Shown in pieces: positions 9,369 through 36,127 of a DNA stretch of 37,639 nt (its first letter is position 1; each line of letters starts with the position of its first letter). The notes below the pieces were generated by a model that was not told the origin of the DNA, did not search any database, and saw only the letters and a program-made list of their open reading frames with translations. This DNA comes from Ginglymostoma cirratum (lineage: Eukaryota): contig JAHRHZ010000002.1 of assembly GCA_024137785.1 (NCBI GenBank), forward strand, positions 15,723,787 to 15,761,425, read 5' to 3'. Position numbers and translations under genes: made by a program.

Positions 9369-9664
9369 CATAGAATCCCTACAGAGTGGCAACATGCCCT
9401 TCAGCCCAACTAGTCCACACCGACCCACAGAGCATTGCACCCAGATCCATCCCCCTATCAACCTACCTGATCTGCACATTCCTGAACACTATGGGAAATT
9501 TAGCACAGCCAATTCACCTAGCCTGCACATCTTTGGACTGTGGGAGGAAACCGGAGCAAACCCACGCAAACACGGGGAGAACGTGCAAACTCCACACAGA
9601 CAGTCACCTGAGGTCCCTGGAGTTGTGAGGCAGCAGTGCTAACCACTGAGTCACCATGCTGCCC
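9369..9664 (-). mobile_element. HE1-type V-SINE
   Basis: tRNA-like head (tggtgactcagtggttagcactgctgcctcac), V-domain core (ctgtgtggagtttgcacgttctccccgtg...ggtttcctcccacagtccaaagatgtgc) and CR1-like tail. Confidence 0.88.
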
Positions 9665-10813: not shown

Positions 10814-11008
10814 CATAGAATCCCTGCAGCATGGAAACAGTCCATTCAGCCCATTCACTCGACAGTGACCCTCCAAGGAGCATCTCACCCAGACCCATAC
10901 ACCCCTTACCCAATAAGCCTGCATTTCCCATGGCCAATCCACCTAACCTGTACACCTTTGGAAACCCACGCAGACACAGGCAGAATATGAAAACTCCACA
11001 CACACAGT
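10814..11008 (-). mobile_element. HE1-type V-SINE, partial
   Basis: V-core and tail similar to the 9369-9664 copy. Confidence 0.75.
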
Positions 11009-11662
11009 CATCAGCGTTAGTGTCCTTACCTCTGAATGCATAGACCCCTGAGTTCAAGCCCCACTTGCTTCCTAAGTGTGTAACCGCATCTCTGAGCAAA
11101 TTAATTCAAAACTGTCTCCGCTGCATCTGAGGCTGCTGCTGTAACGTGGTTTTCTTTTCTAGTCTTTGCGCAATTGTGGTTCTTACTTACTTCGCCTTTA
11201 CGGGCAAGTATCGCTGTAACCTTTAACCCCTTGGGGGGCTGAAGAATTGGAGAAAAGGAGGATGGTGGGAGGATAGCTGCAGAGTAAAAACTGCCCCATT
11301 GGTGAGGGGACCCAATCTCCATGTTTTGCAAGAGGAGGTTGGGAAGGAGAAGATGGTTTGTATTTTTTTGGACAGTAAGTGCTAATAGTAACCCGCAGAT
11401 TTTGGGAGGAATGCGGAAGTGGACACCATGAAATGATTTCAGAAGAATACCTTGGGGAGTGGGGGGAGGGTGTGAGAGGGTTTTTTTTTAGGAATTGACC
11501 AGCCTCAAACAGAGTGAGGCAATGGGTTGGAATGGATTCTTCAGCAGGGGCGAGGATCGGGCAGTTTAGCCTGAGATGATTATTTTTGAATCCGGGTTGA
11601 GCTTTACACTCCGCCCACTTTCTCTGTGTCTGACCGAGGCGGAGAAAAAAGGCCAGCGGTGC

Positions 11663-11834: not shown

Positions 11835-11895
11835 ATGGATCCCCGATCCCTTCTGGTGTTGCTGCTCGCTCTCCTCCGGGCGATCGCTGCAGGAG
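11835..11895 (+). CDS. Exon 1: signal peptide [20 protein letters not shown]
   Basis: ATG in good context (gcggATGG) within a CpG-rich region; Leu-rich core ending in small residues (AIAAG); phase-1 donor G|gtgagg, typical of Ig-superfamily leader exons. Confidence 0.9.
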
Positions 11896-14800
11896 GTGAG
11901 GATCTGGCTGAGGGAGGGAGCATTGAATACCCGCAGGGTCTGCAGGATACGGGGCGCCGGATCCTGGCAGTGGATCCCATTCCCCGGAGCGACCTGGGAG
12001 CAGCTCCGGCCCCGGGATCTCTCTCTCTCTCTCTCTCTCTCAGCCTTTCTGCAGAGACATGTTGAGAATCGAGAAGTTTCTCTTCAGTTAAAAGTTTCAT
12101 CCCGTCGCCTTGGGGCTTGCAAATGGAAATTGTCTTTTCTTGTATTTCTTCCAGGGTTCCACTGTTTCCCCCAACTCCAACCCACTTCACCCCACCCTTC
12201 TCTCCCGGCTCTATGGAGCTCTTCCCTCCCTTCCAAGGCTCTCTAAATTCACCTGTTTCCCTCTGGGTTGTTTCATACTTGCAGGAATCTCCCAGCCAAC
12301 TTTCTCTTCTTTTCCCACAGGGCTCATTCATCCCCTCCTCAATCTCAATTACCCCTTCTCACTCCCTCGATCTCCCCATTCCCATTCCCCCCTCCCCATG
12401 CTCTGTCGTCCTCTCTTTCCCCATGCCCCTTCCCCCTCACTCTCCCCATGCCCGTTCCCCCACTCTCCCGGTCCCTTAAACCCCCTCATCCTTCTCCCTT
12501 TGCTTATACCACCTTCTTTCCCTCCTGCCATCTCCACACACCCCTTTCCAAAGAGTTTGGGAGACACAGACTATTACTCTAAACAAAGTATGATTTGACA
12601 TTGAAAAGAAACTCAAAGGAAAACTTTATTGAACTACAGACTTTCTTTGAACTATGCTCTTTCTCCCTCCTCTCCATGTATCCCTTTTCTCTCTTCCGTT
12701 CCCCCAGTACCCTTTCTTCCCATTTCTGTAAAAAAAATCCTGTAGCCATTTCAATCTTTGGCTAAGTCCACTTCATTACCATACGTTACTTGGTCACGAT
12801 CACATTTCTGTTTTGTGGGGTCTTGCTGTGTGAAAATTGACTGTCGGGTTTTTCACACTACATCAGTGATTTCACTGGCTGTGAAAGAGATTTTACAGAG
12901 ATCATGACAGGCGCTGTATAAGTGAGAATCTTGTGTAGAGCTGGATGAACACAGCAGGCCAAGCAGCATCAGAGGAGCAGGANNNNNNNNNNNNNNNNNN
13001 NNNNNNNNNNNNNNNNNNNNNNNNNNNNNNNNNNNNNNNNNNNNNNNNNNNNNNNNNNNNNNNNNNNNNNNNNNNNNNNNNNNNNNNNNNNNNNNNNNNN
13101 NNNNNNNNNNNNNNNNNNNNNNNNNNNNNNNNNNNNNNNNNNNNNNNNNNNNNNNNNNNNNNNNNNNNNNNNNNNNNNNNNNNNNNNNNNNNNNNNNNNN
13201 NNNNNNNNNNNNNNNNNNNNNNNNNNNNNNNNNNNNNNNNNNNNNNNNNNNNNNNNNNNNNNNNNNNNNNNNNNNNNNNNNNNNNNNNNNNNNNNNNNNN
13301 NNNNNNNNNNNNNNNNNNNNNNNNNNNNNNNNNNNNNNNNNNNNNNNNNNNNNNNNNNNNNNNNNNNNNNNNNNNNNNNNNNTCACATGTTAATGGATTA
13401 CTTTTGTTTCTGTTTTTCATGTCAATCACTTGGAGGGGACAATGTTGTGGCTGCCATTGGTTCATCAGTTTTACTGGATCCTGATCACGGAGCGAATCTC
13501 AGCGACAGTCAGATTGAATGGACGTTCAATAACAGCAGTGGAAAACTTGTTACTATTTTGGATTACGTACCAAATTCCCCAATCCAGAAACCAAATACAC
13601 ACTTCAAATCCCGTTTACGTTTTAATGCATCCAATGGATCAATGATGGTAGACAGTCTAAAACTCGGTGACCAAGGAATTTATACCATCACGGTGAATGG
13701 TACCTGGGAGAGGAGCATGGATCTGAAACTCATAGGTAAGCAATTTCAATACTTTATCACTTTGAAAATGACGGACATTTCAAATCATGAAACAGTTTAC
13801 AGCTTAAGGACTCTGTCATTGAATTGGGACAGGAATAAGCCATTCAGCTCCTCAAACCTATTCTACCCTTCCATGGTTGATCTGTACCTGGTTTCCATTG
13901 ACCTGCTTCGTGCCTTTCTGCCAGCTCCATGACCCAGCAGGAAACCTATTGATCTCATCTGGAAAATTTCAACTGACCCCAGCAGTCAATTCCATAATTC
14001 TTCCTATGGTGGTGTTGGGAGGGGGGAATAGTTAAATGATTTGTGTGTAAAATGGTCCAGCTGTAGCTTTTGAGATTATTCCGTCTTGTTCTGGGTTGTT
14101 CCATCAAGCAAATGTATACTGCTTGTCTTCATTCAAGATTAAACTAAAACTACTGATCAAGATGGAAGAAAGAAATGACAGAAATTGACCTTCAGCTTCT
14201 GCTGTCGTGCTGTATCTGTCATTCCGTCATTGTGGAATTCCTTGGGAATTGTGACCTATGATCTGTTGCCCTACTAGTCACCATAGTCCTGGAGGCTGCT
14301 CTCTCATTGAGACAGAGATGAGTTTTACCTGAGGGTCACCACATCTTAGGGAAGGGGCAAAGTTGAAAAAGTGGGATCTTCATGGTGACCTTAGCTAAGT
14401 ATGAGAATTGAACCCACACCCATTGGCATTACAGACCTGTATTGGTAGGGAGTTAGTTAGCTCAGTTGGCTGGGCAGCTGTTTTGGGTGCAGAGTAATGC
14501 TAACAGTCTGAGTTCACTATGAAGGCCCCATCTTCTTGACCTCATCCCTCTTTGTGGCATGGCGACCCTCAGATTAAACTACTACCAGTCCATGACTCAT
14601 GCACTGGAATGCCTCAGACATCATTCTTCATCGAAGTAATATTCTCTGTTGTGATTTTTTTAATTAGTCATCTGGCTTGTAAGAATACCAGTGTCAGCAC
14701 TCTTCAGAACGTAAACCATCCCAGCAGTACGGATCCCAATTTTCCTAGAATTAGCAGACACTTTTCCCAAACTGTTCTTTGAACCACACATTCACTTGTC

Positions 14801-17800
14801 TAATCTTATCCATCCTGTTGCCAATTTGCACGTGGCTCAGGTAGTAATCCAGAGATTATTACTTTTAAGATTCTGCTTTTTAAATTGGCATTTAATGTCT
14901 CACATTATCTCAGGAGAACCTGTTTCCTAACTCTGGTGCACATCGGTACTAACAATACTGGATCCTTCCCATCCCGCTGCAAATTCTCCGGCCTAGAGCG
15001 TCCCGAATCCTGGCACTGGACAGACAACACGGTGATCCGGACTTGCTGAGGAGGAGAGTGTCCGTCCCCCCTCACTAAACTGTCCCCTATATCACTACAC
15101 TCCTTACTCCACCCCCTCGACTTGAATGGCTCCCTGCAGCATGGTGCCGTGGCCAGTGAGCACATCTACTCTGCAGCCCTAACTCTCATCCTCAAACCTG
15201 TGGGGCCATTATAAAGGCTGAGGGTCCTGTGCTGCTACCCCCTGGGACCCCCTTTACCTGCCTCACTTGTTCCTAACCACTGACTGAATCAGGCCATCCC
15301 ATCATTTAGCGTGTGACTACCGCCTGAAATAAAGTGTCCAGGTAACATTCCCCTCCATCTTGATGTACTCCAATGTCTGCAACTTGACGTCCAGCTCGAT
15401 ATCTCTGATTTGAAGTCCCTGTAAACCTCATGCCCTTACTGCGGATATGTTTCCCCAGGGGACACTGGAATCCAGAAACTCCCACAGGGTGTAACTGCGG
15501 CTTATTCCCTGCCCTCTCTCCTTTGTGTTCATTAATTAGTAATTGCTAATTAGTTCATTTGTAACTAATACAGCCTCTGCCTCCCTCAGCGCTGCCATTA
15601 AAAAGACACTTGAAGGGAATGGGTGAAGAAAGAGAAGGTGGATAGTATTAGGATTGTGGTTAACCGTTCACCCATTTTGGGGATTTCAGACCAGGCTGTT
15701 CGCAAGTGACGTTTGTGTAATATATCGTGAAAATGTTCCCGATGAGTTAAGTACAAAGTGCAATTGGGCTAAGAAAGAGAGGTTGGAACTCTGTCAATGC
15801 CTCAGGAGAAGCTGCAAAAAGCGAAAAACCCTCGTGTACAGTGTTAATATCACAGTCCGTCTAATGTTCCAAGGATATGGATTCAAACCCCACCATGGTA
15901 AATGATGAATCTTTGTCCTGCTCATAAAAGCATGAGAGGGCATCCATTCAAAGTGATGTGCAAAAGAAGCACAACAGTGATGTGAGGAGGAAAAAAAAAC
16001 TTCGGGTGAAAGGGCAGGAGACTGGCCAGGGGAAAGTTAGTTGAGAGTGGAGCGAGAGAAAGCGACGTGCAGCGATGTCTGCAGCTTGACATCCAGCTGG
16101 GCCGAAGCAAGGGGAAAGCTGGGCAGTGTTACAGAGGTGGAGGTGTAGATAGCCTTTGTGATAGGATCAGAGGTTCGTCTCTACTCCAAAGCCAGCTGAG
16201 CTATATGTGAAAGACAGACCAGTTATTAAGCATACTAGCAGAATGCGAAGTAATAATACTGCCTTAACACTCGTTTCTTTTACCTGTTCAGAACCACTGT
16301 CAAAACCTTCGATTGTCAGTAATAGTACCTGTGTGGATACTCCCATTGAACTCATTTGCCAGGTGTCTGGGGGGAAAGAGGACTCTATTCTGTGGTGGAA
16401 AGACAACAAGATGTTAACAAGTAGTCAATATTATCAGTTAGTGCAAAACAACAGCACGTTGATTATTTCTGAAGCACAAGTATCAGACTGCGGGACCTAC
16501 ACTTGCACTGTAGAAAACCCTGTTAGCCAGAAGAATACTTCATATTCTCTCACGCTTCGTGGTGAGTCATGCCAATTGTTGACTTATTTTTTTTTCAAAG
16601 TAATACATTGCTGATCTCGTTTCCCTTCAATTTTTAACTTTGTATGTTTTCACCTTCACCTTTGAACTGGGAGAATATTTTACCGGAAAGGATGGTTGAT
16701 GAGCATGGCCGATGTTTGAGAAAATAGTTTGTGATGGGTCCTTGAGGAAGAAGCATTCTGGGAAGGGGAAAAAACCATGGTTGACCAGTGAAGTTAAGGA
16801 TTGTATCAAATTAAAAACAAAAACATTGATTGTGGCAAAGATAAGTGGTAAACCAGAGGTTGGGGAGAGTTTTAAAAGCCAACAGAAGGTGATCAAAAAG
16901 AATGGAGAAAATAAACTATGAGGATAAGCTACAAAATAATATAAAAATACACAGCAAGAGCTTCTTTAGTTATCTAAAAAGGAAAAGAGAGGCCAGAATG
17001 ACCATGGTGGCCTTAGGGAACAAAGCAGGAGAAACCAATAAATGGCAGAATCAAATAAATACTTTGCATCTGTCTTCATGGTGGAGGATATTAATGACAA
17101 TTACTTCCAAAAATAATAAATAATCATGGGGCTAAATTTGGTGGTCTGGGGGGAAGAGATGAAAATAGTAATTATCACTAGAGAGAGCGTACTAGGAAAA
17201 TTAATGGGACTAATAACCAATAAATCTACTGAACCAAGTGGTTTGCATGCAAAGATGCTATAGGAATAGTGGATACCCTGGTAGGAATCTTCCAATAATC
17301 CTAAGATAATGGAAAAATTCAAGGAGTTTGGAAAACTATCAATGTAACACTTTATTCAAAAAGAGAGAGAGTAAGAACAGGTAACTTTAGGCCAGTTAGC
17401 TTAACATCTATCATGGAAAATTTTAGTGACGATTACAAAGGACTTAATGGAGTCTTTATTAATGTATAATATAATCAAGTAGAGTCCGTATAGCTTCACA
17501 AAGGGGTAAGTCACCACAGTGCCAGAGGACTCATGAGAGAGAGATAACAGGTTGTGGTTTAACATGAGGGTCACCACAGACAAGGAGCAAGATTCAGAAG
17601 GCAGGATCTTCATGGTAATATCAGCCAGTTCAAGAATCGGACCTACACTTGGCATTACCAAACCAGCCTGTCTAGCCAACTGAGCTAACCTGATGTGGGA
17701 AGCGTGAAATACCAAATGAAAGTCCTTTGATTTACTTTTCTGATTGTGGAATCTCTGTTCAATTTTGTGACAGCGTGGAACATAATTTGCACTGCATCTG

Positions 17801-20800
17801 AAGTATGATACCAGTGTTAAATATGTGAAGCAAGTGCGGTTTTATAATCTATCACATAATGCCTTGAATAAGAGCAATTATATTGAAAAATGTACCCATT
17901 GGGAATTTGTAATCTGGTGTGAAAGTGTAGAAGGGAATGGTAAGGGATTTCGGAAGATTGTAGATAGAAGGTATTTGCTTTCCTGAGTGGTTTTGGAACA
18001 GTGAGATGAGAGCATATCCTAATGGTACCCTGTGTGGTCCAGGCAGATCTAATGGTGAATAGGAAAGTCCCAATTATCCACCACATCTGATCAAGTCTGT
18101 GTCCCATTGATTTACAAAGGAGTGTAAATGCTTGTCCTTCCAAATCTAATCACCTTCGAGCATTTGCGATGAAGTTGCACCAGTCTTTCATCCCACTGGA
18201 TTGTTTCTGCCCTCCAGAAGTCTATACTACATTGGCTTGCTGTTTACTCATGTCAGCCTAGTTTTCTGCCAACAGCAAATGTCAATATTGGGCTCCTAAC
18301 GCCAATTCAAACCACCCGTTTACAGCTCGGAGCCAGTGCCAAACAAAGCCAGTTGCCTTAAGTGCTTAGTTTTCCGCCAACTATCTAAATTTGTACTTAC
18401 TCATATTAGGAGGAATATTATTCAATGGCAGGATTTCAGGAAGGGAAATGAACGAGAAGCAAAAAGATTTCAGGATGCAACTCCAGAGCATGGGGGTGTG
18501 CATATGGCTGAAAGTACCTTGGAAGGAAAACACAGTGAGAAGTTTGAATAGTGGGATGAGAATGTTACATTGAAGACATTGTAGGATGTTCACCAATGTA
18601 AATCAGTGAGGACAAGGGTGGTAGGGCAGAGGAAGTTGGCAAAGGATCACATGCAACTGACACATATTCAGGTGGGCCGACCTTTAGGATGGACAGACAG
18701 TGGGAGATGGGTGAGGAAAAGGTGGTGTAGGCAGGGTTGCTGAATATTTTTAAGAGGGAAGTAGATGGATTCCGGTTAGGCAGGAGAGTTAAAGGTTATC
18801 ACGTGTGGATGGCAACGTGGAATTTGGAACACAAACACATCGACCATGATCTTATTGAACAGCAGAGCAGGTTCATAGGGCTGAATGGTCCACTCCTGCT
18901 CGTAATTCCAATGCTTGTACCTATAAGGTTTGGAATAGTCGAACCTGGAAGTGAGAGGGGGTTAAAAGGTCAGTATTTGAGTTGGGTTGAAGTCAGGGGC
19001 GAAGTGGAGAGCGGATGAAGGCAGTATGTATGATAGGATTGCGGGGTTGGGACTTTGAACCTATTTTCAGGAATGTGATATGTTTAAAGACAATGCGGGA
19101 GGGTGGCACAGCGGCTCAGTACGTTACATAATATCATTACAATAGCATTATGTGAAGCAGTAATGATGTCTACTTCTCAGACCTGTTTAGTGATGTTCAG
19201 GAGCACTTGCTCACATTAATGCTGCCTGTAGCTGATAACTAGCTTGTGGAGGGCTCTGATGTTTGTCTTGTGTTCGTGCCGCAGGAAGTGTACTTTTTTA
19301 AAAACTCTGAAGAGATTATTTACTATCTTTAAAAGGTGGAAGAAGTTCCTGTTTGTATTTTTAAAATCTGATTTGGCTCACACGATGACTTTCTTGTAAA
19401 ATTTCTATTTCAGGCCTGACACGTCTGCACCATAGCATTTTGGCATTTTCTGTTGCAGCATTGGTCACTGCTGGTGTCATACTGATCACTGCTGTTGCAA
19501 CTCATTTGGATAAAACCTTGCATGTGAGCGAGGACGGTAAAACATGTAAGTGAAAATTGTTTTTGCTGAAGGTTCAAAACTTAGAACTTAATTTTGCAGA
19601 TCCTGCAAAACTTTGAAAAATGATGCCCATGTCATGTTAAATATTGATCCTCAATTCTCAGAATCGACCCTTTGATTGCATGAACATTCTCTGCTTGAGT
19701 ATTGTTGATATCAATTTGCGTATTTTCCCAGGGCTTCCATTTATTCGAGAGAAGATGCGGCATTTGTTGAAGTTTGCACCAGTGTTTTCACTCCTTTTCT
19801 TTTCCGTTGCATGCGTATGTTGGATACTGACTGAAGGTAGCGTATGTTCACTCACTGTTACTTTTCTCATTTAGTAACTGCATTTCCAGTCTTCTTCAGA
19901 AATGCTGGACTGGGTGTTAGGGGACTCAGTGGTCACCAGATAAAAGTTAGGCAGGGCTTGGTGAGGGAAGTTGGGAAAATCTACCTACAATATCGCTGGC
20001 TGTTCCTCAGCGGTTTAACACCTGGAGCAGTGTTAATGTCCTTGAGGAGAGACTTCCAATTCAGTCACTGGCAGCCCCACTCCAGAACGCAGCCCAAACT
20101 CCAGGCAGCTCACAAAGAAGAGAAGCCCAAGCATTCGGGATGGATGGGTAACTCCGGGGTATCGCCAGGGCAGACCCCAGTGAGGGAGGTCATGGTGGTG
20201 GGGGGATGATTTGCGAGGCTGGGGTGAGGGCAAAAGGGACTTTCAGGAGCAGAATTCCTCCTGAAAAGGTAGTCCACCTCTGTCCTGCCCAGCCCTCACA
20301 ACTAAAGCTACAGGGCTACCTGCTGAGCAAGGGCCTTCCCTTGCTGTGGGTAAAACAAAAATGGCAGAGATGGGCTGAGGCTCCTCAGTGACCACCAGAC
20401 CAGCTGCCAGGGGGAAGGAGGGCCGTCTAATGCCCGATAGGGATTAGATAATAGAAAAGACACCAAGCTGGCGTCAAAGCAGAAAACAGAAGTGGATTGG
20501 AGGCCAGCATGGTGGCACTGAAGTCAGCACTGGACGGGTTCGATTCCTGCCTCGGGTGACTGTCTGTGTAGAGTTTGCACGTTGTCCCAGTGTCTGCGTG
20601 GGTTTCCTCCGGGTGCTCCGGTTTCCTCCCACAGTCGAAAGATGTGTGCGTTGGGGTGGATTGGCCATGCTAAATTACCCATAGTGCCCAGGGATGTGCA
20701 GGCCAAATGTTTTAGCCATGGGAAATGTGGGGATAAGGGGATGGGTCGGGGTGGGGCGTACTGAATGGGTTGTACTTCGGAGTGTCGGTGCAGATGCAGT

Positions 20801-23800
20801 GAGCTGAATGTCATTTTGCCACGCTGTAGAGATTCGATGATTCTAATAACAGTGACAAAGTCTAGCTTAGAGTGAAAAATAATGGAGGGCCATTTTCTGA
20901 CAGCACTGCACCCCGTGAAATTGACTGACAGCCATGAGAGTGTGGTTTGTGGACGGGATGGAGTGCCTTAGTGATTGTCTTCCATATTTGTAGATAATAT
21001 TGAGAGCTGCGACTTCTCTAAAGATGCTTCTTGCATTTTTAAATGCACCTTCGCAATACCAGGTGGTTCCTAGCTCATGCATTATTTTTTTCTTTGCTTG
21101 AAGTACAATCTGGATCCGAGCAGCATGCGATCACCAGCGTTACTGAAAGATAAGCAACTTACTGTGGCTGCCTTTGAAATTTGGCATTCTTGCATGTGTC
21201 CTGATGAGTGCAGAATGAAATGGCTCAATGGCATGTCCCTTTTCTTTTAATTCATTCATGGAATGAGGGCATCGCTGGCTAGGCCAGCATTTATTACCCA
21301 TCCCTAATTGCCCAGAGGGCAGTTAAAAATTAACCACATTGCTGTGGGTCTAGAGTCACATGTAGGCCAGACCAGGTAAGGATGGCACTTTCCTTCCCTA
21401 AGGGGCATTAGCGAACCAGTTGTTTTTTTTTTACATCAATTAGTCTCTTACTTCCAGATATTTGTTGAATTTAGATTCCACCATCTGTCACAGTGGGATT
21501 CGAGCTCTGGACCCAGAACATTACCTGCGTCTCTGGATTAACAGTCCAGCAATAATAGGACTACACCATTGCCTCCCCTGTTTCTTAGGAACTTTGAAGT
21601 TCTGTGCTACCAAGTAATTATCACCTGCTTTTCCTACAAAACAGGGTCCTTTTGCCTTTAACTGAGATGGAGTAAGGGACCTTGACTCTACACCTCATTC
21701 TAAAGAGAGTCCCTTCATTTGTGAAATGCTCTCTTAATGCTGTGCTGAATTGGGAGCTTAGATTATTTGCTCGCCTCTCTGAAATGGAACGTCGGTCTCA
21801 GATCCTCTCTCTTTGGGTTACTGTTTCTGCTAAATACCAGGCAGACTGTACCATACATCCATGAGGGTGGCTGCCTGAGTTTCCATCGATTACCTGAAAT
21901 AGATGGAGAATGGAATGGATTCTCACAGGACTGTGCCCTGATCCATCCAGCTTTCCTGGACGCAGAACATCCGAGCAATCCAGCAAGAGGAAGTCTTCCC
22001 CGTACATTTCTTCACCGGTTTGCATTCCCCAGAGGCACAGCNNNNNNNNNNNNNNNNNNNNNNNNNNNNNNNNNNNNNNNNNNNNNNNNNNNNNNNNNNN
22101 NNNNNNNNNNNNNNNNNNNNNNNNNNNNNNNNNNNNNNNNNNNNNNNNNNNNNNNNNNNNNNNNNNNNNNNNNNNNNNNNNNNCTCCTTCTGTTTTATTT
22201 GTTCACAGTTTGCCTAGACATGCACCATACGCTGACTTCACTGAGTCAATTCATTGCAAACCCAATCCCAATGGTGCATATAATAGGACATGCTGGTAAG
22301 TGTTCAAATGTAAAGTCATAGCCCAGAAATGGTTTCTGAAAGCAGCGACCCACAAAGAATCTTGTAATCGGAAGAGCCGATCACAGCTGTAGGTGATATA
22401 ACCTACCGCTGAATGAAGAGAGAGAGTGATCAACAGGAAATCCTTGCTTTGAGAATTGTTAGAGCATAGATTGCTCTGTCATTGGGAATTTTAAAAACAA
22501 CATTTACATTCAGAAGATATGAGTGTTGCTGCCAGCATTTATTTCCCATGAGAAGGTTGTATTGAGTTGCCTTTTTGAAACTACCACATTCCATTTAGGA
22601 GAATGATATCCATCCTCTTCCTCTTAAGGCAGGGACCATTGCATCTTTTCAAGGAGAACAGAGCCTTGTGATTAGGCTTAGGATTACTCTCGCAACATAC
22701 CCTCACGAACCCAATGGGCCAAGTGACTTCCTTCTCCTCTTTCAAAACTTGAAGTCAAGTTAAACAGCCACTGATTGGGCGCTGTAACAGAAACACAAAC
22801 TAACAGTGAAAGGGAACTTAGAATGGGCAAACTTGAAGCTTAGTAAATCGATGTACCGTGTCAGGGGTCAGCCCACCATGGAGCCCACTGGCCTTGAAAG
22901 GCTCCACATGCTCCCTCTTCATGGACACTTGAGCATGGACATGTAAACAGCAAAATGGGGGCAGTCAGTCCAGTATAGTGATCTCCTCCATAGCCCACTG
23001 CCTGGACTGGTTCCATATTTACACTTTGATCTTTGACCTTCCGATCTCTCCACAGTCTACCTACATGGGGTGCCTGTGGATCAGGAGCGTGGTGCCAAAA
23101 TCAGGGGCAGCCCCTTCAAAAAAACTTAGGAGGGGTTTCAAGCGAGAACATTCAACAGAAATGTGGAAAACCATTTCACCCCAGACCACAAAAACTACAT
23201 GTGGCCTGGCAGCCATTTATTTATTAGTGACTGTGTTCTTTGCTGTAAAAATATATGGGTCTGTAAGTTAAGAATTGCCCGAAGGTACATCCAGTTTTTA
23301 TATTTATCCCTTTATCAACCTATGACTGTGTGTAATTTTGTTCACTTTTTTGATCTTTTAATAGGGCATTCTGGAATCAATGTTGTTCTGTCAATGTCTT
23401 GGCTTCTCCATCTCACAGTAGTACTTTTAAATTATCGTTTCATCTGTGACAAACCCATGTTAAACAAGATCATCTCGAACAAGTGTAAGTTGACAATTGT
23501 AGTTGTTAATCTCACTCTTATCCAAACCTTTCCCAATGGTAAGAGCCTTAATTAAATTTTCGCTGGCAATCTCCACTCCGTTGAGACAGTCCCATCAATT
23601 TTAGCCCACAACGTTATATCCTCATTACAGGAAAGATGTGGAAGCTTTAGAGAGGGTGCAGAGGAGATTTACCAGGATGCTGCCCGGACTGGAGGGCAGG
23701 ACTTATGAGGAAAGGTTGAGGGAGCTAGGGCTTTTTTCATTGGAGCGAAGAAGGATGGAGAGGTGACTTGATAGAGGTGTACAAGATGATAGAGACATAG

Positions 23801-26800
23801 ATAGAGTGGATAGCCAGAGACTTTTTCCCAGGGTGGAAATGACTATTACGAGGGGGCATAATTTTAAGGTGATTGGAGGAAGGTATAGGGGAGATGTCAG
23901 AGGCAGGTTCTTCACACAGAGAGTGGTGGGTGTGTGGAATGCGCTGCTGGCAGTGGTAGTGGAGTCAGATACTTTAGAGACTTTTAAGTGACTCTTGGAG
24001 AGGTGAATGGAGGATAGTAAAATGTAGGGTATGCAGGGTAGATTAATCTTAGTAGGATAATAGGTTGGCACAACATTGTGGGCCGAAGGGCCTGTACTGT
24101 GCTGTGCTGTTCTATGTTTCTATGTTACAACACTAGACCTTACGCCCGGTGACTTGAATGCTTCTCCTTTGAGACGTATCATTATTATGCAGTTGGCTGC
24201 TGTCCCTCCCAAAGTCAGTAGACATGTTGGTGGCTGTGTCTCCAAGCAGATCATTTTAGTCACCGCATGACTGAGGCAGTGAGCTGTCACAAACTTTATT
24301 TTTGGCTCTCCACCCATTTTCAAGTTACCATTGTTTCGCTTGCGAGCGAAATGGAACAGGAGAGCTGCAGTTCATGCTGTCATCGCTCATTTTACATTAA
24401 GTTTGTGTTACGAAGGAGAAAATGGCCGAACCGCTCTGATAATTAAATTAAAACACAAGCCCCAATCTGTTGTGGTAGGAGTCGGGGCTCCCCTCTAATA
24501 AACCTCCCCAAAACCCCCCGAGAAGCTCGTCTTTCCCCTCATAATCTATTAAAAGAGTGGTTAAAAGAAAGAAAATCCCTGATCTCCACTTTACAAGTAA
24601 CAAGAAACAATTTATTTCCCAACAATGAACAAATTAACAAAATTACTAACAAACTGACAATTCCCTCTCAGACTACTAACTACTCCCTAACTGGTCTACA
24701 TTCTACTGGAATGCTGTTTAAATAAAGACAAGCCCCACTAAAAGAAACCCAATGAATAAGAAGCAATAAATTATAACTTATTTTCTCCAATTTGACACTG
24801 ACTGTCTTCTGGAATATTCTGTCTTCTCTGGTCTCTTCACAAACACTTTTCTTGCACTAATTCTGCTGTTAGGGATGTTTTATCTCTATAATTTAGTTAA
24901 TGAGGACTTTGAGCTGAAGTACTATGGTACCCTTGATTAATTAGTTGGGCTTTCTCTGAGCACTGAATGGTGCTAACTCTGGCAGTTGGCCGATGGCTCT
25001 CTCTTTCAGATGGCAGTTAGCTCTCCCCAATTTTCCAAATGCCCTTGTCTAATATATCTGTAATGACATTATCAAATTCTTATAATATGATTGGTTTCAG
25101 GTTGTAAACACCATCAGATTTAAATTCAATTGGCTTTCTGTATCTAGGTGCTTCTTTTAAATTAATTGGCCAAATTCAAACTTGTTGTCTTGGAAGAAAC
25201 TGCTGCTTGGCTGTTCTAAACAAAATGTTTCCATCTGGGCGCACTCTGTGCACACGTTTTTATAAACTTCCGAGCGCAGACAAAGCACTAGCTCCTAAAG
25301 AGGTCATGACACGCTTTTCTTCACAATCATCTTTACCAACAAATTCTAACTTCCGACCTTCCAATTCTCAAATATGCGACCCAACTTTGTCACAGTTGGG
25401 ACCAGCCAACATGCAGGAGCGGCAAGCCGGGGATGTAAATCTGCCAGAGTGTCTCTGAAAAGTTTGGGAAGCCCTTCCTGTCATTAGTCAGGTCAGCCTG
25501 TGGCGGTCTATCTCTGAGAAACAGGCTGCTAAACCCACTGCTTCTGAAGGATTGACTATGCCTTTGGCTCGAACGCCTGTTTCCAACATGCAGGTGCTCC
25601 CATGTTTGGAGATTCATCACAAAGAGTCCAAAGCAATGGATGGAATTTGTATATCAACAGCTCCTGGGATGACTAATCGCTGGAAGAGGTCTCCATCTGT
25701 GTGAAGTCAATGCTGATTGAGATAAATAAGCTAGCAGAATCGTAGAAACCATACTGTGTGGAAGGGGGCCATTTGGCCCATCAAGTCCAGACTGAGTCTC
25801 GGATGAGCATCCCAGCCAGACCCACCTTATCCCTGTAACCCCACATTTCCCATGGCTAACCCACCTAGCCTGCACTTCCCTGGATACTATGGGCAATTTA
25901 GCATGGTCAATCCAACTGATCTGCACATCTTTGGACTGTGGGAGGTAACTGGAGCACCCAGAGGAAACCAATGCAGACGCAGGGAGAATATGCAATCTCC
26001 ATGCAGATAGTTGCCCGAGGGTGAAATTGAACCCTGGTCCCCGGCACTGTGAGGCAGCAGTGCTGACCACTGAGCCACCATGCTACCCCAGCAAGTGAAG
26101 TAAGATCAGAGTAGAAATCTGGAGTTAAGGTATCGGGTTCATCATCACAGAATCGAAGAATTATTACACTTCAGAGGTGGGTATTCAGCCCATCATACCA
26201 GCTCTATTATCTAACCTGACTATATTATTTCCTGCCAATTTTCCCCATATCCCTGCATATCATTGCATCAATTATAGCTATAAAAAGACCATAGCACCTA
26301 TAAGCTATTCAGTCAGAGATCATACAGCGCGGAAACAGACCCTTCAGTCCAACCAGTCCATGCCTAACATAATCCCAAACTAAACTGATCCCACCTGCCA
26401 GCTCCTGGCCCATATCACTCCAAACCTTTCCCATTCATGTAGTTATCCAAGTGTCTTTTAAACTTTGTAACTGTGTTTACGTTCACCACTTCCTCAAGAA
26501 GCTCATTCCACATGCGAACCATATGTACGACTGGCCCGACAAGCATTGTATATAGTTCCTTGAACGTGGCGTTATGTGTAGATAGGGTGGTGAAGATGGC
26601 ATTTGGCATGCTTGCTTTCATTGGTCAGAGCATTGGATTTGGGAGTTTGGACGTCATGTTGCGATTATACAGGATGTTGGTGAGGCCACTTTTGGAGTAC
26701 AGCATCCAGCTCTAGTTGCCCTGCTATAGGAAAAGTATTGTTAAATTGAAAAGAGTGTAGAACAGATTTAGAAGGATCTTACTGGGACTTGAGTTGTAAG

Positions 26801-29800
26801 GAGATCCTGGATAGGCTAGGATTTATTTCCCTGGAGCATTGGAGATTCAGGGGTGAGTTTATAGAAGATTATAAAATCATGAGGTCCATTAATAAGGTGA
26901 ATAAAAAGGTCTTTTCCCCAGGGTAGGGAAGCTCAAAACTAGACGGCATAGGTTAAAGGTGAGAGGGGAAAGATTTATAAGGAACCTTAGCGGCAACGTT
27001 TTCATGCAGAGGGTGGTGCGTATGTGGAATGAGCTGCCAGAGGAAGTAGTGGAGGCTGGTACAATCTTTAAAAGGCTTCTGAATGGGTATATGAGTAGGA
27101 AGGGTTTAGAGGTATGGGCCAAACATAGGCAAACGGGACGAGTTTAATCTGGGAAGCCTGGTCGGCATGGATGATTTGGACCAAAGGGCCTGTTTCCTTG
27201 CTGTATGACTCCAAACAAATGGCCTGAGGTATATTTGAGGGGTGAATATTAGCCAAGATAGCAGCAAGTTCACCTGCTCTTCATAAAGGAAAGCCATTCA
27301 AATGAGTGGAAGCAAAGCATTCCAGTCAATCATCTAATCCTAAAGACAGCATCTCTGACAGTACAGCGCTCCTGCAGTACTGCACTGAAATGCTTGCTTA
27401 GATTACATGTTCCGTCTCTGGAGAAGGGCTTGAACTTATGCCTTTGGGTTCAATGTTCCTCTATTTACAATTGTTTGATCCCCTGGGAACATAAGTACAG
27501 CAGAAGAGCTGGTGAATAGCACACACCTATGGGAAGGAGGCCACATGATTTATCATATGGGCTCCGTTGTTCCTTCCTGCTAGATTTTATTGAATTCACA
27601 CACTTAAATGATCCAATCATCACCAGGACAGCGGCAAATTCTCCGCTGTATTTCCTTGACCAGTTGCGTTACTCAGGAGCACAGTTAGAGGCGGATAGGG
27701 TTTGTGTGTGTTTTTCTCTCTCTCAGCAAATCTCCTCTTTCACCTGTTCCCAGTTTGCCGTGTTGTCCTGAATGTCGCAGCTCCTGTCATTGCTGTGTTT
27801 GGGCCGAGTATCCTCATCAGAGAAGTAATTAAACAAACCGGTGAGTGCTGTCTGACAAAATTAATTAATGAATTCTGAAAGTAACATCCCATCAGGAGTT
27901 GTATCATTAGGAGAGCTCACTGCTGAGTTATTTTGGCCGGTTTTCATTGAAACCCGTCAAACTCCTAAGTTTACAGTGCCATCTGCCCTTTGTTCAATTG
28001 CTTCAAATCTGTTTCCCCTTCTCTACGTGTTTTTTCTCACAGTTACCCAGATGCAATGATTCCTATCTCAAACATGCCCTGTGACAAAATATTTCCATGC
28101 TTCAAAACCTTTGTAAATAAGTTCTTCAAACCTTTACTTTCATTCTTGACTGACTTTTCTTTACTGAAAACCCATATTCATCGAAGGAAATATTTTCTGT
28201 ATTTGTTCTATTTATCTCCTTAGAATGTCTACAAACTTTCTCATCTGTGATTTCCAACTGTCCATTCCTTGACACCTGATGGCCTTTAGTTTCTTCAGTA
28301 ATTTTCTTCCAATCCCTTCATCAGTTCACTTGTAAAAGATCCCACATTGTAATCTAATCTAGAATAAAATAGAATATCCTTTCAATTATCCTTTAACTGA
28401 TTAAACCCAACACTTCCTCCAAATCACATTCTACTTGAGGGCAGCACAGTGGCTCAGTGGTTAGTATTGCTGCCTCACAGCGCCAGGAACCTAGGTTCAA
28501 TTCCACCCTCAGGTGACTGTCTGTGTGGAGTTTGCATGTTCTCCCCACATCTGTGTGGGTTTCCTCCCACAGTCCAAAAAATGCCAGTTAGTTGGGTTGG
28601 CAAAGCTAAATTGCCCATAGTGTGTGGGAAGTGCTGGTTAGGTGGTTTAGCCATGGGAAATTCAGATAGGGTGGTGGGTGGGCTGCTGTTCAAAGGGTCA
28701 CTCTGGGCTGAATGGCCTGCTTCCCATACTGTAGGGATTCTACTTAATGTGCCTGGCTATAACATCTTATGATTGTCTGCAGTGAAGTTTTTAATTGTCA
28801 TGATTAGAATTTTAATTTAGCTATTGACATGATGATCTCTATTCACAGATAGCGATTGTGGCTCAGCAGCCATACTGCCATCAACTATAATTCTGACCAT
28901 GGTGATTACATTGGTTATTCTTGCTGTAACCTTTGTACCCTATAAAATATGTAAGTAATGGTGGGTGAAGTTGTTTCAGATCTACTATTAATGGACATAT
29001 ATTGTTGTGAGCAGAAACCTTGACTGGATTTTCCTCTTCATTCTCTCCTGACCATCTGCAGTGCAGATTGGGCCATCCCAAACTCCTCACAGGATCCCTA
29101 CGATGCAGAAACAGACCATTCAGCCCACTGAGTTCACACCAACTGTTTAAAGAGCATCCCTCCCACACCCTGTTATCCCCGTAACCCTGCATTTCCCATG
29201 GTTAATCCACCTAACCTGCACATCTTTGGATTCTGGGAGGAAACTGGAGCACCCAGAGGAACCCCATGCAGACACAGGGAGAATGTGTAAACTGTACACA
29301 GTCACCCAAGGCCAGAATTGAACCTGGGTCCCTGGCACTGTCAGGTAGCACTGCTAAGCACCGAGCCACCATGGCCCATAACCTTCCAACTAATTTGATT
29401 AGAAACAGATTAGGAATTTGCTGAAGTTGCCTAGTTTGTGTCAGGAACACTGAATTGGAGAATCTTGATCAAGGCTCTTCAGTCATTCTGCATTCACTGG
29501 TGGTATTTTGTGAACCGTAGTACTCTCTCCTTTTTATTACTGCTAGGTTTCTGTGTAATCGATGAGTTTCCCTTAACTGCATGACAGTAATGACACCCTG
29601 CATTAAACTGATCAGGTGAAGTCACCATAGCCCTTCTGCGCTATCATTAGAGAGAGATGCCTGGTGGTGGTTTAACCTGAGGGATCCATATCTCAGTTGA
29701 GGGGAGAGATTGAGAGGAGGTTGAGGGTAACCTCAGCCTGTGTGGGAGTCAAACCCATGCTGTTGGTGTCACTGTGCAGCCTACTGAGCTGACCGACCCC

Positions 29801-30844
29801 ACCAGTTCCAAGGAAGGGTCACTGGACCTGAAAGTCTGCTTTCTCTCCACAGATGCTGTTGAGTTTCTAAGAGCAACTTCCATTTTTGTTTCTGATTTCC
29901 AGCATCCACAGTTCTTTCCATTTTTATAAAATTCAACCTATATTGTATTGCGGAAAACGCATTTGGACTAATCCAAATTTAATGAAAACCTTTGTTTAGT
30001 TAATCTTTACATCGATACAACTGATTGTTCATTCACGTCAACAGACATCGAATGGAAAAAACAACCAGTTGGAACTCCTCCTGCAAGTACGAGTTTCGGA
30101 GGTTCTGATCATCATCAATGTACTGTAAGTATTAGACTTTAATAGAAATTAGAAGTTTGACAGGCAACTGTGCCCTGAATCTTCATAAAAGTAGTGCAAA
30201 TGCAAGATTCTCTTTTATTATGCCATTTGCTTGGAGAGTCAGAAAAGCCAGAGTAACTATTGAGCTTACTAGGAACAGAGGTGTTTGATTCTGGGGATGT
30301 ACAGATTACAAGAATTATCTCTCATAAACTATCCTCTCCATTAAGTGTTTAAAAGGAAAATCAAATCCTTGAGGCAAAGGGTACAAAGTGCAAACAATTA
30401 ATTTTATATACAAGCATTTAATACTAGAAAAACATATTGCCAATTTTCCTTTCTCAATTGCAGTAAATGATCTTTTGAAAATAATGTAAGTTTTCAAAAA
30501 TAAAGGAAAAGGTGCTGTATTGAGATGATTTGAAATGCTGTATTGAAACACCTGTATTGCAGTATGGTCCACAGTGAATATGTTTATTATGTTAGATAGG
30601 GCAAACATTACTCGTTCGTAAAATGTAACCTTGACAAATATACGTGGTTCACATCTCAAAGGGAAAAGAGCTCAGCTTAATTCTTCGATATAAAATTCAA
30701 ACAAAATTCATGTGAAGAAGTTGGACCAATAACTGATTTTACGTTTTTATGTGTTTAAGTAAACAAAAATGGTGTTCTCAGGCTTTAAATAAGTTTACCT
30801 TTACCTTGCTGTAGGAGATGAAGAAAACACCCTCAAGTCCATGA
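11835..30844 (+). CDS. Spliced gene, 10 coding exons (11835-11895, 13421 or 13436-13735, 16292-16561, 19414-19545, 19732-19836, 23365-23484, 27754-27840, 28849-28950, 30045-30124, 30815-30844): signal peptide + IgV + IgC2 + 5 TM + short cytoplasmic tail, ~428-433 aa
   Basis: The exons join in one open frame (1302 nt with the 13421 start, 1287 nt with 13436). Introns are GT-AG except the 13421 option. Introns 1-8 are phase 1 and intron 9 is phase 0. The loops predicted to be cytoplasmic are basic, as the positive-inside rule expects. Confidence 0.82.
12018..12041. repeat. (CT)n microsatellite in intron 1
   Basis: Seen directly. Confidence 0.9.
12795..12925 (+). mobile_element. Deu-domain SINE (SacSINE1-like) 3' fragment
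   Basis: tgtggggtcttgctgtgtgaaaattgactg...ggcgctgtataagtg resembles the recalled DeuSINE core and tail. Confidence 0.6.
12932..12982 (-). mobile_element. Penelope-like 3'-terminal fragment running into the N-gap in intron 1
   Basis: gtgtagagctggatgaacacagcaggccaagcagcatcagaggagcagga matches the PLE terminus seen at 4430-4478 and 34700-34748. Confidence 0.85.
13421..13735 (+). CDS. Exon 2: V-set Ig domain lacking the B-F disulfide (CD2/SLAM/CEACAM/HEPACAM-type N domain)
   Basis: [11 protein letters not shown]...IEWTF...[28 protein letters not shown], with the C-strand W and DxGxY motifs and no Cys. Donor G|gtaagc at 13735. The acceptor is ambiguous (tttttcat|13421 or gag|13436). Confidence 0.9.
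13810..14110 (-). mobile_element. Old CR1 3' fragment
   Basis: aggaataagccattcagctcctcaaaccta... resembles the reversed CR1 tail. Confidence 0.55.
14850..15500 (-). mobile_element. CR1 ORF1 (SGNH/GDSL esterase-like) remnant
   Basis: IGDSLVRG motif in ORF 14905-15165. Confidence 0.65.
16292..16561 (+). CDS. Exon 3: C2/I-set Ig domain
   Basis: EPLSKPSI...ELICQV...ILWWKDNK...NNSTLII...[14 protein letters not shown] has the canonical C, W and YxC plus the NPVS motif seen in CEACAM/SLAM/HEPACAM C2 domains. Acceptor ttcag|AA, donor G|gtgagt, phase 1-1. Confidence 0.95.
16670..17505 (+). mobile_element. CR1 ORF2 internal fragment (intron 3)
   Basis: [25 protein letters not shown], and a [10 protein letters not shown]-coding stretch at about 17380-17410; multiple frameshifts. 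Confidence 0.85.
18712..18912 (+). mobile_element. CR1 3' end
   Basis: ccatgatcttattgaacagcagagcagg...gggctgaatggtccactcctgctc tail. Confidence 0.75.
19414..19545 (+). CDS. Exon 4: TM1 ([23 protein letters not shown]) and start of cytoplasmic loop 1
   Basis: Acceptor tttctatttcag|GC, donor T|gtaagt, 132 nt, open in the phase-1 frame. Confidence 0.9.
19732..19836 (+). CDS. Exon 5: basic loop (REKMRHLLK) + TM2 ([19 protein letters not shown])
   Basis: Acceptor tattttcccag|GG, donor GAAG|gtagcg (somewhat weak), 105 nt, phase 1-1. Confidence 0.82.
20501..20845 (+). mobile_element. HE1-type V-SINE (intron 5)
   Basis: V-domain gggtttcctccgggtgctccggtttcctcccacagt. Confidence 0.88.
21250..21580 (-). 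mobile_element. tRNA-derived SINE, same family as 930-1192
   Basis: Reverse-complement match including ggccagaccaggtaaggatggc...ttccttccct. Confidence 0.75.
23365..23484 (+). CDS. Exon 6: TM3 ([18 protein letters not shown]) + basic cytoplasmic loop 2
   Basis: Acceptor ttttttgatcttttaatag|GG, donor T|gtaagt, 120 nt, phase 1-1, open frame. Confidence 0.8.
23627..24125 (+). mobile_element. CR1 3' end (intron 6)
   Basis: [33 protein letters not shown]; terminal (ttctatgt)n repeat. Confidence 0.9.
24404..25394. mobile_element. Possible solo LTR in intron 6
   Basis: TG...tgtcaCA-type ends, clustered CCAAT/ATTGG boxes and poly(A)-like signals; left boundary and TSD not convincingly identified. 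Confidence 0.3.
25736..26087 (-). mobile_element. HE1-type V-SINE, full length (intron 6)
   Basis: Head with A/B boxes, V-core and tail on the minus strand. Confidence 0.88.
26310..27212. mobile_element. CR1 fragments (about 26310-26520 -, 26545-27212 +)
   Basis: [15 protein letters not shown] and [19 protein letters not shown] motifs. Confidence 0.85.
27340..27440 (-). mobile_element. Deu-domain SINE 5' fragment
   Basis: Reverse complement agtgcagtactgcaggagcgctgtactgtcagagatgctgtcttt resembles the Deu core. Confidence 0.6.
27754..27840 (+). CDS. Exon 7: TM4 ([19 protein letters not shown])
   Basis: Long pyrimidine tract then ttcccag|TT, donor G|gtgagt, 87 nt, phase 1-1. Confidence 0.85.
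28438..28745 (+). mobile_element. HE1-type V-SINE (intron 7)
   Basis: gtggctcagtggttag...ggttcaattcc head and V-core. Confidence 0.88.
28849..28950 (+). CDS. Exon 8: extracellular DSDCG + TM5 ([17 protein letters not shown])
   Basis: Acceptor ctctattcacag|AT, donor T|gtaagt, 102 nt, phase 1-1, strongly hydrophobic. Confidence 0.88.
29090..29376 (-). mobile_element. HE1-type V-SINE (intron 8)
   Basis: Reverse-complement head and V-core. Confidence 0.88.
29618..29800 (-). mobile_element. tRNA-derived SINE, second unnamed family (other copies about 4010-4155 +, 14278-14430 -, 14448-14590 +, 17508-17690 -)
   Basis: Shared gtcaccatag...tttaacctgaggg..cacca body and a ggtcagctcagt / ggttagctcagttggct head. 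Confidence 0.7.
29807..29918 (+). mobile_element. Degenerate short PLE-type terminal repeat, same family as 540-650
   Basis: aggaagggtcactggacctgaaa...ccacagatgctg...tttttgtttctg is similar to 551-648; the hammerhead core is broken (ccaagga). Confidence 0.6.
30045..30124 (+). CDS. Exon 9: cytoplasmic tail [27 protein letters not shown]
   Basis: Acceptor caacag|AC, donor ACT|gtaagt (phase 1-0); WKK stop-transfer-like residues follow TM5. Confidence 0.78.
30815..30844 (+). CDS. Exon 10 coding part: EMKKTPSSP-stop
   Basis: Acceptor tttaccttgctgtag|GAG, TGA at 30842-30844. The frame assumes direct splicing from exon 9; a missed micro-exon would give [14 protein letters not shown]-stop instead. 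Confidence 0.62.
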   Translation, partial: EMKKTPSSP

Positions 30845-31225
30845 CACACAGCTACCACTGAAGTGACTCAGGGATCACTGCTACCTGAGAAGAACAACTT
30901 TAAACCTTGCGATTAAAGCACTACCTGAAATTTGCACTGTAAATACTGAGAAATTGAACTACTTGCAGCTCATTTCAGGAAGGAAATCTATGTGTTTCCT
31001 TGGTCTGACCTAAATGTGACTCCAGACTGAGTCTGGACAATGTCTTGTTTTCATCATGTCATCGAACAAGTGTGGACTCCAGCTAAAGCCTAACATTTCA
31101 AGAGCTTTCAAATTGCCAATTCTTGTTCGAAGTTTTTGTACTGGATACTTCTTTTAATACTTTATACCTGTACTTATGTGTGTGCTTCGTATCACATTTT
31201 ATTATTTTTCTCTGGATTACTAGAT

Positions 31226-35864: not shown

Positions 35865-36127
35865 CTGAGGCATTCCACTCCCGTACATCTCAGATGTCCT
35901 CGTTCTTTAAGGACCGCAACTTCCTTGGTCAACTTCCTGCAACACTCAGATTCACATTCACACACACAGACTATCATGCAAACTCATATCTACATGTTCA
36001 TGGACTCACATCCATATATACATAATGACACAGTTACACCTTGGGATATACACAGCCATAGTTAAATGTGCAGACAGTCACACAGAGAGTTATTTTTCTC
36101 CAAATTTATAGAACCTGAAGCTATTTG

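Follow-up and report, generated by a model that had tools for sequence, protein, structure and literature searches.

A transcribed gene of Ginglymostoma cirratum for a predicted receptor with two immunoglobulin domains on five membrane helices

The window analysed here is a stretch of 37,639 nucleotides (nt) from the genome of the orectolobiform shark Ginglymostoma cirratum, and the gene in question lies on its + strand between positions 11835 and 30844. In our best explanation, to which we give a probability of about 0.75, the locus is a single transcribed gene of 11 exons. Its product would be a membrane glycoprotein of ~457 residues with a signal peptide, a cysteine-less V-set immunoglobulin (Ig) domain, a C2 domain, five transmembrane (TM) helices, each encoded by one phase 1-1 exon, an insert encoded by exon e5b and a short tail. 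On the same explanation, the gene belongs to a large unnamed multigene family of sharks and rays, which is undescribed and known as automatic predictions only. The membrane domain resembles that of CD47 in its build; common descent of the two is unproven.

Exon chain, transcription and domains of the predicted receptor

The exons are numbered e1-e10, with e5b between e5 and e6 (Table 1). Exons of the window were searched individually, and the whole-protein work was done on natural database relatives. The internal exons have AG/GT borders with a pyrimidine tract at each, and the lengths of e2-e8 are divisible by three in phase 1-1. Summed over the 11 exons, the coding sequence has 1374 nt including the stop, which corresponds to ~457 codons. 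The original prediction, made from the letters of the window, had listed the leader, V, C2 and five hydrophobic exons. Splice-site and frame checks find all of these, with AG/GT borders and phase 1-1, while the chain itself proved incomplete: e5b (87 nt) had been overlooked, and with it the proposed product of ~430 residues becomes one of ~457. The acceptor of the V exon is the first AG past the pyrimidine tract; the tract itself, 15 nt upstream, ends in CAT and not CAG. The frame resulting from this choice of AG agrees with the zebra-shark and epaulette-shark relatives. The whale-shark orthologue XP_048472931.1 (393 residues, N-terminally cut and named 'uncharacterized protein') is colinear with e2-e10 in tblastn at 77-94% identity per exon, and its mapping brought to light e5b, the tail exons and the correct 3' boundary of e4.

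Four sequencing runs were mapped on 16250-22040; X1, X2 and X4 come from three different studies, and X11 consists of raw polyadenylated (polyA) RNA reads. In X1, a 1334-nt contig at depth 40 carries consecutive letters of e3, e4 and e5, with a further 130 letters on the e2 side and 695 past e5. Contigs of both X1 and X2 and a single raw polyA RNA read of X11 show the joint of e3 and e4 (16560 to 19413, GT..AG); that of e4 and e5 (19545 to 19732, GT..AG) is present in contigs of X1, X2 and X4 and, again, in one such read. RNA fixes the e4 donor at ACAT/GTAAGT (end 19545), so that the TM1-TM2 loop has ~30 residues. The loose end of the X1 contig behind 19836 is the first 30 nt of e5b. The 695 nt past e5 suffice for the part from e5b to the stop (506 nt) and 189 nt of 3' untranslated region, with only the first 30 letters read as e5b; no polyA signal was found near 31033, where the contig is predicted to end. 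Of the words sampled from 27600-29100, five RNA-type runs contain a share of 0.08-0.09, and with e7 and e8 alone a share of 129/1471 = 0.088 would be expected. Transcripts ending after exon 4, or leaving the TM exons unjoined, had been named beforehand as evidence that would speak against a five-pass protein; the RNA instead continues past TM1 into TM2 and e5b.

Both assembly gaps in the gene lie within introns. Across the gap in intron 5, the X1 contig goes from 19836 directly to the letters of e5b without extra letters; thus, no exon is hidden there, and order, strand and frame hold. At the gap in intron 1, the leader and the start of the V exon match relatives from zebra shark and epaulette shark at the N-terminus, where those proteins contain no additional residues, and we infer from this comparison that continuity and frame probably require no hidden exon between leader and V.

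The V exon matches the Pfam V-set model at 3e-7 and Receptor_2B4 at 6e-4, the latter with 20.4 bits just below the cutoff of 21, and contains zero cysteines. Receptor_2B4 passes at 31.2 bits in the sevengill-shark member P0002, and the Pfam SLAM model is sub-threshold in members P0027 and P0002. The C2 exon matches I-set at 8e-17; it has the canonical cysteine pair and an extra cysteine in the E-F turn (SDCGTYTC). In a Foldseek search with the model of the whole whale-shark orthologue, the best matches in the PDB are Ig proteins, led by murine CEACAM1 (3r4d_A, E 1.7e-6, 25% identity). The ectodomain combines a V domain of the CD2/SLAM/CEACAM type, devoid of cysteines, with a C2 domain that is disulfide-bonded.

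The best 19-residue Kyte-Doolittle means of the membrane exons are 2.46 (e4), 2.33 (e5), 1.88 (e6), 2.23 (e7) and 2.61 (e8), and that of e5b is 1.06. AlphaFold places five helices in the whale-shark orthologue, at 125-157, 161-204, 232-253, 269-298 and 304-337 [48-sequence alignment, mean predicted local distance difference test (pLDDT) score 69]. Since Foldseek with this whole orthologue returned Ig matches alone, we also folded P0196, a natural catshark fragment composed of half of C2 and the whole membrane domain. This model (68-sequence alignment, mean pLDDT 74, block pLDDT mostly 63-85) has five long helices plus a short one in the cytoplasm. In the window exons, the combined lysine and arginine counts of loops 1 to 4 are about 6, 0, 5 and 2, the tail has a basic start, and these loop charges fit a predicted topology of five spans with the N-terminus outside and the C-terminus inside (N-out/C-in). 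The five-pass topology proposed from the sequence therefore holds up in prediction: the spliced tail YKI/Y/IEWKK and the basic loops agree with the earlier description, the charge counts fit, and the models give five helices, where a prediction of two or fewer TM segments had been named as counter-evidence. Searches with the single TM exons against Pfam and with e6 against the PDB by phmmer gave no match, the pieces of 28-43 residues being too short to inform. Foldseek and VIA structure searches with the P0196 model returned generic helical bundles only, which speak neither for nor against a known fold, and an ESM Atlas search with the membrane part came back blank. The membrane domain is one without a Pfam model.

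The cytoplasmic tail of ~40 residues is encoded by two mini-exons (e9 and e10). No immunoreceptor tyrosine-based inhibitory motif (ITIM), switch motif (ITSM) or YxxL is conserved in the tail; e9 and e10 have no ITSM, and their tyrosines are juxtamembrane only. The sole tail tyrosine of whale and zebra shark outside the juxtamembrane part (QHQYTEL/QHQYTEQ) is a cysteine in the window (HHQCT, within 30045-30124), which counts against a conserved tyrosine-based signalling motif. At 30842-30844, the window has TGA; the whale-shark codon at this place is GGA (Gly), and its frame continues for 25 more residues. The letters after the TGA are still similar to the whale-shark extension (HTATTE.VTQGSLLPEKNNFKPCD); thus, the tail appears to have been shortened recently in Ginglymostoma cirratum.

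In the 68-sequence alignment, the canonical cysteine pair of C2 is invariant, and two further cysteines occur in 82% and 84% of the sequences. One is that of DCGxYxC in C2 (within DxGxYxC; SDCGTYTC in the window), and the other lies in the TM4-TM5 loop (DSDCGS in the window). Among the sequences with a residue in both columns, both cysteines are present in 46 and absent from five (Y/W twice, S/R, G/F and S/F); the loop cysteine alone occurs in five and the Ig cysteine alone in none. The E-F turn is located at the membrane-facing end of an Ig domain. Because the two cysteines are kept or lost together, the alignment suggests that the E-F-turn cysteine of C2 and the TM4-TM5 loop cysteine form an Ig-to-membrane disulfide in the manner of CD47.

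A phmmer search with the V exon gave 286 matches at E<=1e-3 among 1.84 billion representatives, and jackhmmer with the membrane region finds the same domain in ~50 of the 160 collected proteins. The same architecture recurs in more than 50 related proteins, each of them from a shark or ray, and every relative in two wider searches (35/35 and 53/53) is elasmobranch. Members occur in the shark genera Rhincodon, Stegostoma, Chiloscyllium, Hemiscyllium, Heterodontus, Scyliorhinus, Mustelus, Carcharodon, Cetorhinus, Heptranchias and Pristiophorus and in the ray genera Hypanus, Hemitrygon, Mobula and Pristis, with several loci per species, which carry adjacent LOC numbers on one chromosome-sized record. 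Outside the family, V-domain matches shorter than 700 residues have three hydrophobic segments at most. The automatic names of the members range from 'uncharacterized' through HEPACAM-like, HEPACAM2-like, CEACAM1/6-like and hemicentin-1-like to contactin-6-like, VEGFR2-like, CD276 homolog, CD48-like and CD2-like. The original prediction had foreseen such HEPACAM/CEACAM-like labels with the five-helix part overlooked, and it had proposed an uncharacterised receptor family of cartilaginous fish; the names confirm the first and the shared architecture of cysteine-less V, C2 and five helices supports the second, with members found in elasmobranchs only. No description of a shark family with Ig domains on five helices was found in open-access papers and preprints.

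In alignment A2 of 49 full-length members, mean pairwise identity is 52% in each Ig domain versus 27% in the five-helix domain, a comparison biased by the gathering of the set through the V domain. Better conservation of Ig domains than of helices is the opposite of the expectation for the ectodomain of a diversifying receptor. Five proteins of other species (P0154, P0172, P0006, P0042 and P0106) have one Ig domain on five helices at ~310-375 residues, the size of CD47, some without the C2 exon and others without the V exon; these single-Ig forms are predicted isoforms or paralogues.

Several points weigh against the explanation given at the outset. In this species, the junctions from e1 to e2 and from e5b through e6, e7, e8 and e9 to e10 have indirect support, from the length of the contig, the word share and the gene models of orthologues. 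Confidence of the two models is moderate (mean pLDDT 69 and 74), e5b could enter the membrane, and the tail stop has a different position from that in the whale shark. The covariation counts include related sequences and come down to about four independent double losses and three single losses. No chimaera, bony-fish or tetrapod member turned up in searches that were seeded with the V domain or needed shared five-residue words and were not exhaustive; with just the membrane region of P0013 as query, a word-indexed search returned three close relatives only and is too insensitive for distant kin. Finally, the function of the receptor is inferred only, by analogy.

Kinship to CD47, the exon 5b insert and the extent of the product

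CD47 has been called the only five-TM receptor of the immune system, with a unique fold (PMC8410850). Its Ig domain sits directly on five helices in N-out/C-in topology with a short tail from mini-exons (PMC10902115), and an Ig-to-loop disulfide (C15-C245, alias C33-C263) is required for normal ligand binding and signalling (PMC10902115; PMC8410850). An SWF linker before helix I and GLG atop helix III are conserved, and the protein diverges fast, with 17 of 305 residues common to human and birds/reptiles (PMC8410850). The shark family might consist of true, very divergent CD47 family members and be the counterpart or sister of CD47 in elasmobranchs, with a second Ig domain either retained or acquired, but we regard this as unlikely. 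Such kinship would explain the equal build, from the Ig domain on five N-out/C-in helices to the mini-exon tail, and the probable disulfide between Ig and TM4-TM5 loop. It also agrees with sub-threshold matches of PF08204, the Ig model of CD47, to the membrane-proximal C2 of some members (E 0.0018, 0.012 and 0.09; best 18.5 bits versus a cutoff of 21). Moreover, CD47 (17/305) and the shark membrane domain (27% mean identity) both diverge fast, so that a lost homology signal is plausible.

The direct comparisons speak against such kinship. PF04549, the model of the CD47 transmembrane region, matches in 0/14 members (eight full-length ones at E<=1 and six short ones at E<=10), and CD47 is not among the best 60 phmmer rows for P0196 against the PDB. 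Foldseek, the comparison of the TM region with CD47 that had been called for, ranks 7myz_C (PDB 7MYZ) 21st for the P0196 model, among acetylcholine receptors and G-protein-coupled receptors (E 1.1, probability 0.16, TM-score 0.22, root-mean-square deviation 21 Å), and CD47 is absent from the best 50 VIA rows. The SWF and GLG motifs occur neither in the window, where helix III starts GHSGINVV, nor in the family consensus. The extra Ig cysteine lies in the E-F turn and not in the N-terminal strand, the family is multigene where CD47 is single-copy, and, in place of the single N-terminal disulfide-bonded IgV of CD47, there are two Ig domains, of which the N-terminal one is a V of the CD2/SLAM type without cysteines. 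As a statement of relatedness, the 'CD47-like membrane domain' of the original prediction is therefore unsupported. With no PF04549 match, no significant fold match and no motif, it cannot be said that the family links the SLAM/CEACAM and CD47 groups, as had been suggested. A broader scenario, in which sharks and rays hold a second, expanded class of Ig-tethered five-pass proteins that shares its membrane-domain ancestry with CD47, and CD47 is the lone survivor in other vertebrates of an old V-C2-5TM lineage with a V of the CD2/SLAM type, is put forward here only tentatively.

Exon e5b, whose acceptor lies 25 nt past an N gap, is also present in the whale-shark orthologue. It adds a 29-residue insert and gives a TM2-TM3 loop of ~35 residues, so the loop described earlier as tiny (TEGHSG) is wrong for this gene; in the many paralogues without e5b, the loop is as short as first described. 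Exons e5b and e7 have the same length (87 nt) and phase, a cysteine as second residue, a hydrophobic run and similar endings (..EVMGQ(S/T)G versus ..EVMKQTG), a likeness that is clearest in catshark, houndshark and bullhead-shark members. By these features, e5b looks like a duplicate of the TM4 exon inserted between TM2 and TM3 in one subfamily only. A copy of a TM exon that is fairly hydrophobic in carcharhiniform members might truly cross the membrane. That would make six spans and invert the later parts of the protein, with the TM3-TM4 loop and C-terminus outside and the TM4-TM5 loop inside. We consider this quite improbable. The hydropathy of e5b in the window is 1.06 versus 1.9-2.6 for the five helices, its residues include two prolines and four histidines, and the orthologue model gives it pLDDT <50 and a helix of ten residues only. 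The inversion would also place the K/R-rich loop 3 outside and the conserved, co-varying cysteine of loop 4 in the cytoplasm, and the members with e5b all retain both cysteines. On account of this displacement of loop charge and cysteine, e5b is tentatively taken as an outer or interfacial insert in the TM2-TM3 loop.

In run X2, one contig (245 nt, 19517-19761, depth 8.4) retains the 186-nt intron 4. Continued into the intron, the reading frame closes after ...GKTCK, which would yield a single-pass V-C2-TM1 form; the contig may represent a minor isoform or mere pre-mRNA. It is highly improbable that this single-pass receptor of CD2/SLAM/CEACAM-like form, ending just past TM1, is the working product and that the later exons are untranslated or belong to another gene. 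The spliced form is deeper in the same run (24 versus 8.4) and is the form found in X1 and X4, the X1 contig extends 695 nt beyond e5, and the downstream exons hold frame and phase, are 78-94% conserved with the whale shark and recur as the same chain in gene models of more than 15 species. A pseudogene is ruled out by coding exons that are all open, spliced and transcribed, with the stop position alone differing from the whale shark, and two separate genes by the presence of Ig and TM exons on one RNA contig.

Coordinates and repeats of the window

Table 1. Exons of the gene and assembly gaps, in positions of the window.
Feature	Positions	Strand	Content	Basis
e1	11835-11895	+	ATG and signal peptide; donor GAG/GTGAGG, phase 1 at end	Sequence reading; N-terminus like epaulette-shark and zebra-shark members
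e2	13436-13735	+	Cysteine-less V-set domain; 300 nt, phase 1-1	Pfam, phmmer, tblastn with orthologues
e3	16292-16561	+	C2/I-set domain; 270 nt, phase 1-1	Pfam; tblastn whale shark 93%; RNA contig piece 16290-16560
e4	19414-19545	+	Linker, TM1, first half of cytoplasmic loop; 132 nt, phase 1-1	Hydropathy 2.46; RNA joints on both sides
e5	19732-19836	+	Basic loop and TM2; 105 nt, phase 1-1	Hydropathy 2.33; RNA contigs X1, X4; whale shark 94%
e5b	22209-22295	+	Weakly hydrophobic insert between TM2 and TM3; 87 nt, phase 1-1	tblastn whale shark 90%; RNA loose end
e6	23365-23484	+	TM3 and basic cytoplasmic loop; 120 nt, phase 1-1	Hydropathy 1.88; colinear with orthologue models; model helix 232-253
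e7	27754-27840	+	TM4; 87 nt, phase 1-1	Hydropathy 2.23; tblastn 78%; RNA word share
e8	28849-28950	+	Extracellular TM4-TM5 loop with conserved cysteine (DSDCGS), TM5; 102 nt, phase 1-1	Hydropathy 2.61; tblastn 79%; cysteine covariation
e9	30045-30124	+	Cytoplasmic tail (Y); 80 nt, enters phase 1, leaves phase 0	tblastn whale shark 81%; splice sites
e10, coding part	30815-30844	+	EMKKTPSSP, then TGA	tblastn 88%, stop aligned to G of whale shark
N gap	12983-13382		Inside intron 1; end 53 nt before V acceptor	
N gap	22042-22183		Inside intron 5; end 25 nt before e5b acceptor	

Two stretches of intron 5, 20518-20711 and 21100-21681, reach a summed depth of 10^3 to 10^5 in RNA-type contigs with many variant letters and behave like high-copy transcribed repeats of the short interspersed nuclear element (SINE) kind. 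Similar short open reading frame motifs occur on both strands near 9390-9640, 10830-11040, 25650-26070, 28450-28770 and 29150-29450. Decayed coding remnants of retroelements lie at 4478-6826 (+) and 35055-35977 (-), the latter being a related piece in inverted orientation, and a 421-residue open reading frame at 4993-6258 has a weak match to the reverse-transcriptase model RVT_1 (E 0.001, below cutoff).

Proposed working and comparison with known receptors

By analogy with the N domains of CD2/SLAM/CEACAM proteins, the V domain would bind a partner on another cell, either homophilically or heterophilically. The C2 domain may be pinned to the helical bundle by the candidate disulfide, which would fix the pose of the ectodomain like C15-C245 of CD47. 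Because the tail has no conserved tyrosine motif, lateral signalling or sorting is proposed, and the bundle of five helices would most likely relay any signal laterally to membrane proteins associated with it, as in CD47 with integrins. With many paralogues in each genome, the family looks like a recognition system that is diversifying.

What is new here is another set of the Ig superfamily on five helices, with dozens of relatives across shark and ray proteomes that automatic names have hidden. This is also a warning for annotation, as a membrane part without a Pfam model goes unnoticed. Sharks and rays are the oldest living jawed vertebrates, and families found there bear on questions of comparative immunology: how the CD47 design originated, what role a five-helix base has for an Ig receptor and which targets expanded families recognize. 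If the two membrane domains are unrelated, the design of Ig on five helices with an Ig-to-loop disulfide arose twice.

The ectodomain finds its counterparts in two groups of receptors. With the CD2/SLAM family (CD2, CD48, 2B4/CD244 and SLAMF1-9), the shark protein has in common the succession of a cysteine-less N-terminal V and a disulfide-bonded C2, Ig exons in phase 1 and numerous N-glycosylation sequons, and the Receptor_2B4 and SLAM models of Pfam score from weak to passing. Signalling members of that family carry an ITSM (TxYxxV/I). The family members are single-pass or anchored by glycosylphosphatidylinositol (GPI) and have ITSM tails, whereas the shark protein has five predicted helices and no ITSM. 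The V and C2 ectodomain is likewise common to CEACAM and HEPACAM proteins, and the closest structural match of the shark ectodomain model is CEACAM1. However, CEACAM and HEPACAM proteins have a single-pass or GPI anchor and no multi-pass domain, while the anchor of the shark protein consists of five predicted helices encoded in the same transcript; HEPACAM, moreover, has a long cytoplasmic tail, unlike the shark protein.

The membrane part finds its counterpart in CD47 and the poxvirus CD47-like proteins, in which an Ig domain also sits directly on five helices in N-out/C-in topology. The shark protein further shares with CD47 a probable disulfide between the TM4-TM5 loop and the Ig domain nearest the membrane and a short tail, encoded by mini-exons, without a classical tyrosine motif. 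The differences from CD47 extend over the whole molecule. The shark protein has two Ig domains, the outer of which is cysteine-less and of the CD2/SLAM/CEACAM type, and the Ig cysteine of the putative disulfide lies in the E-F turn in the shark family and in the N-terminal strand in CD47. An exon-derived insert occupies the TM2-TM3 loop of the shark protein. Lastly, CD47 is a single gene, whereas the shark family is large, fast-diverging and multigene.

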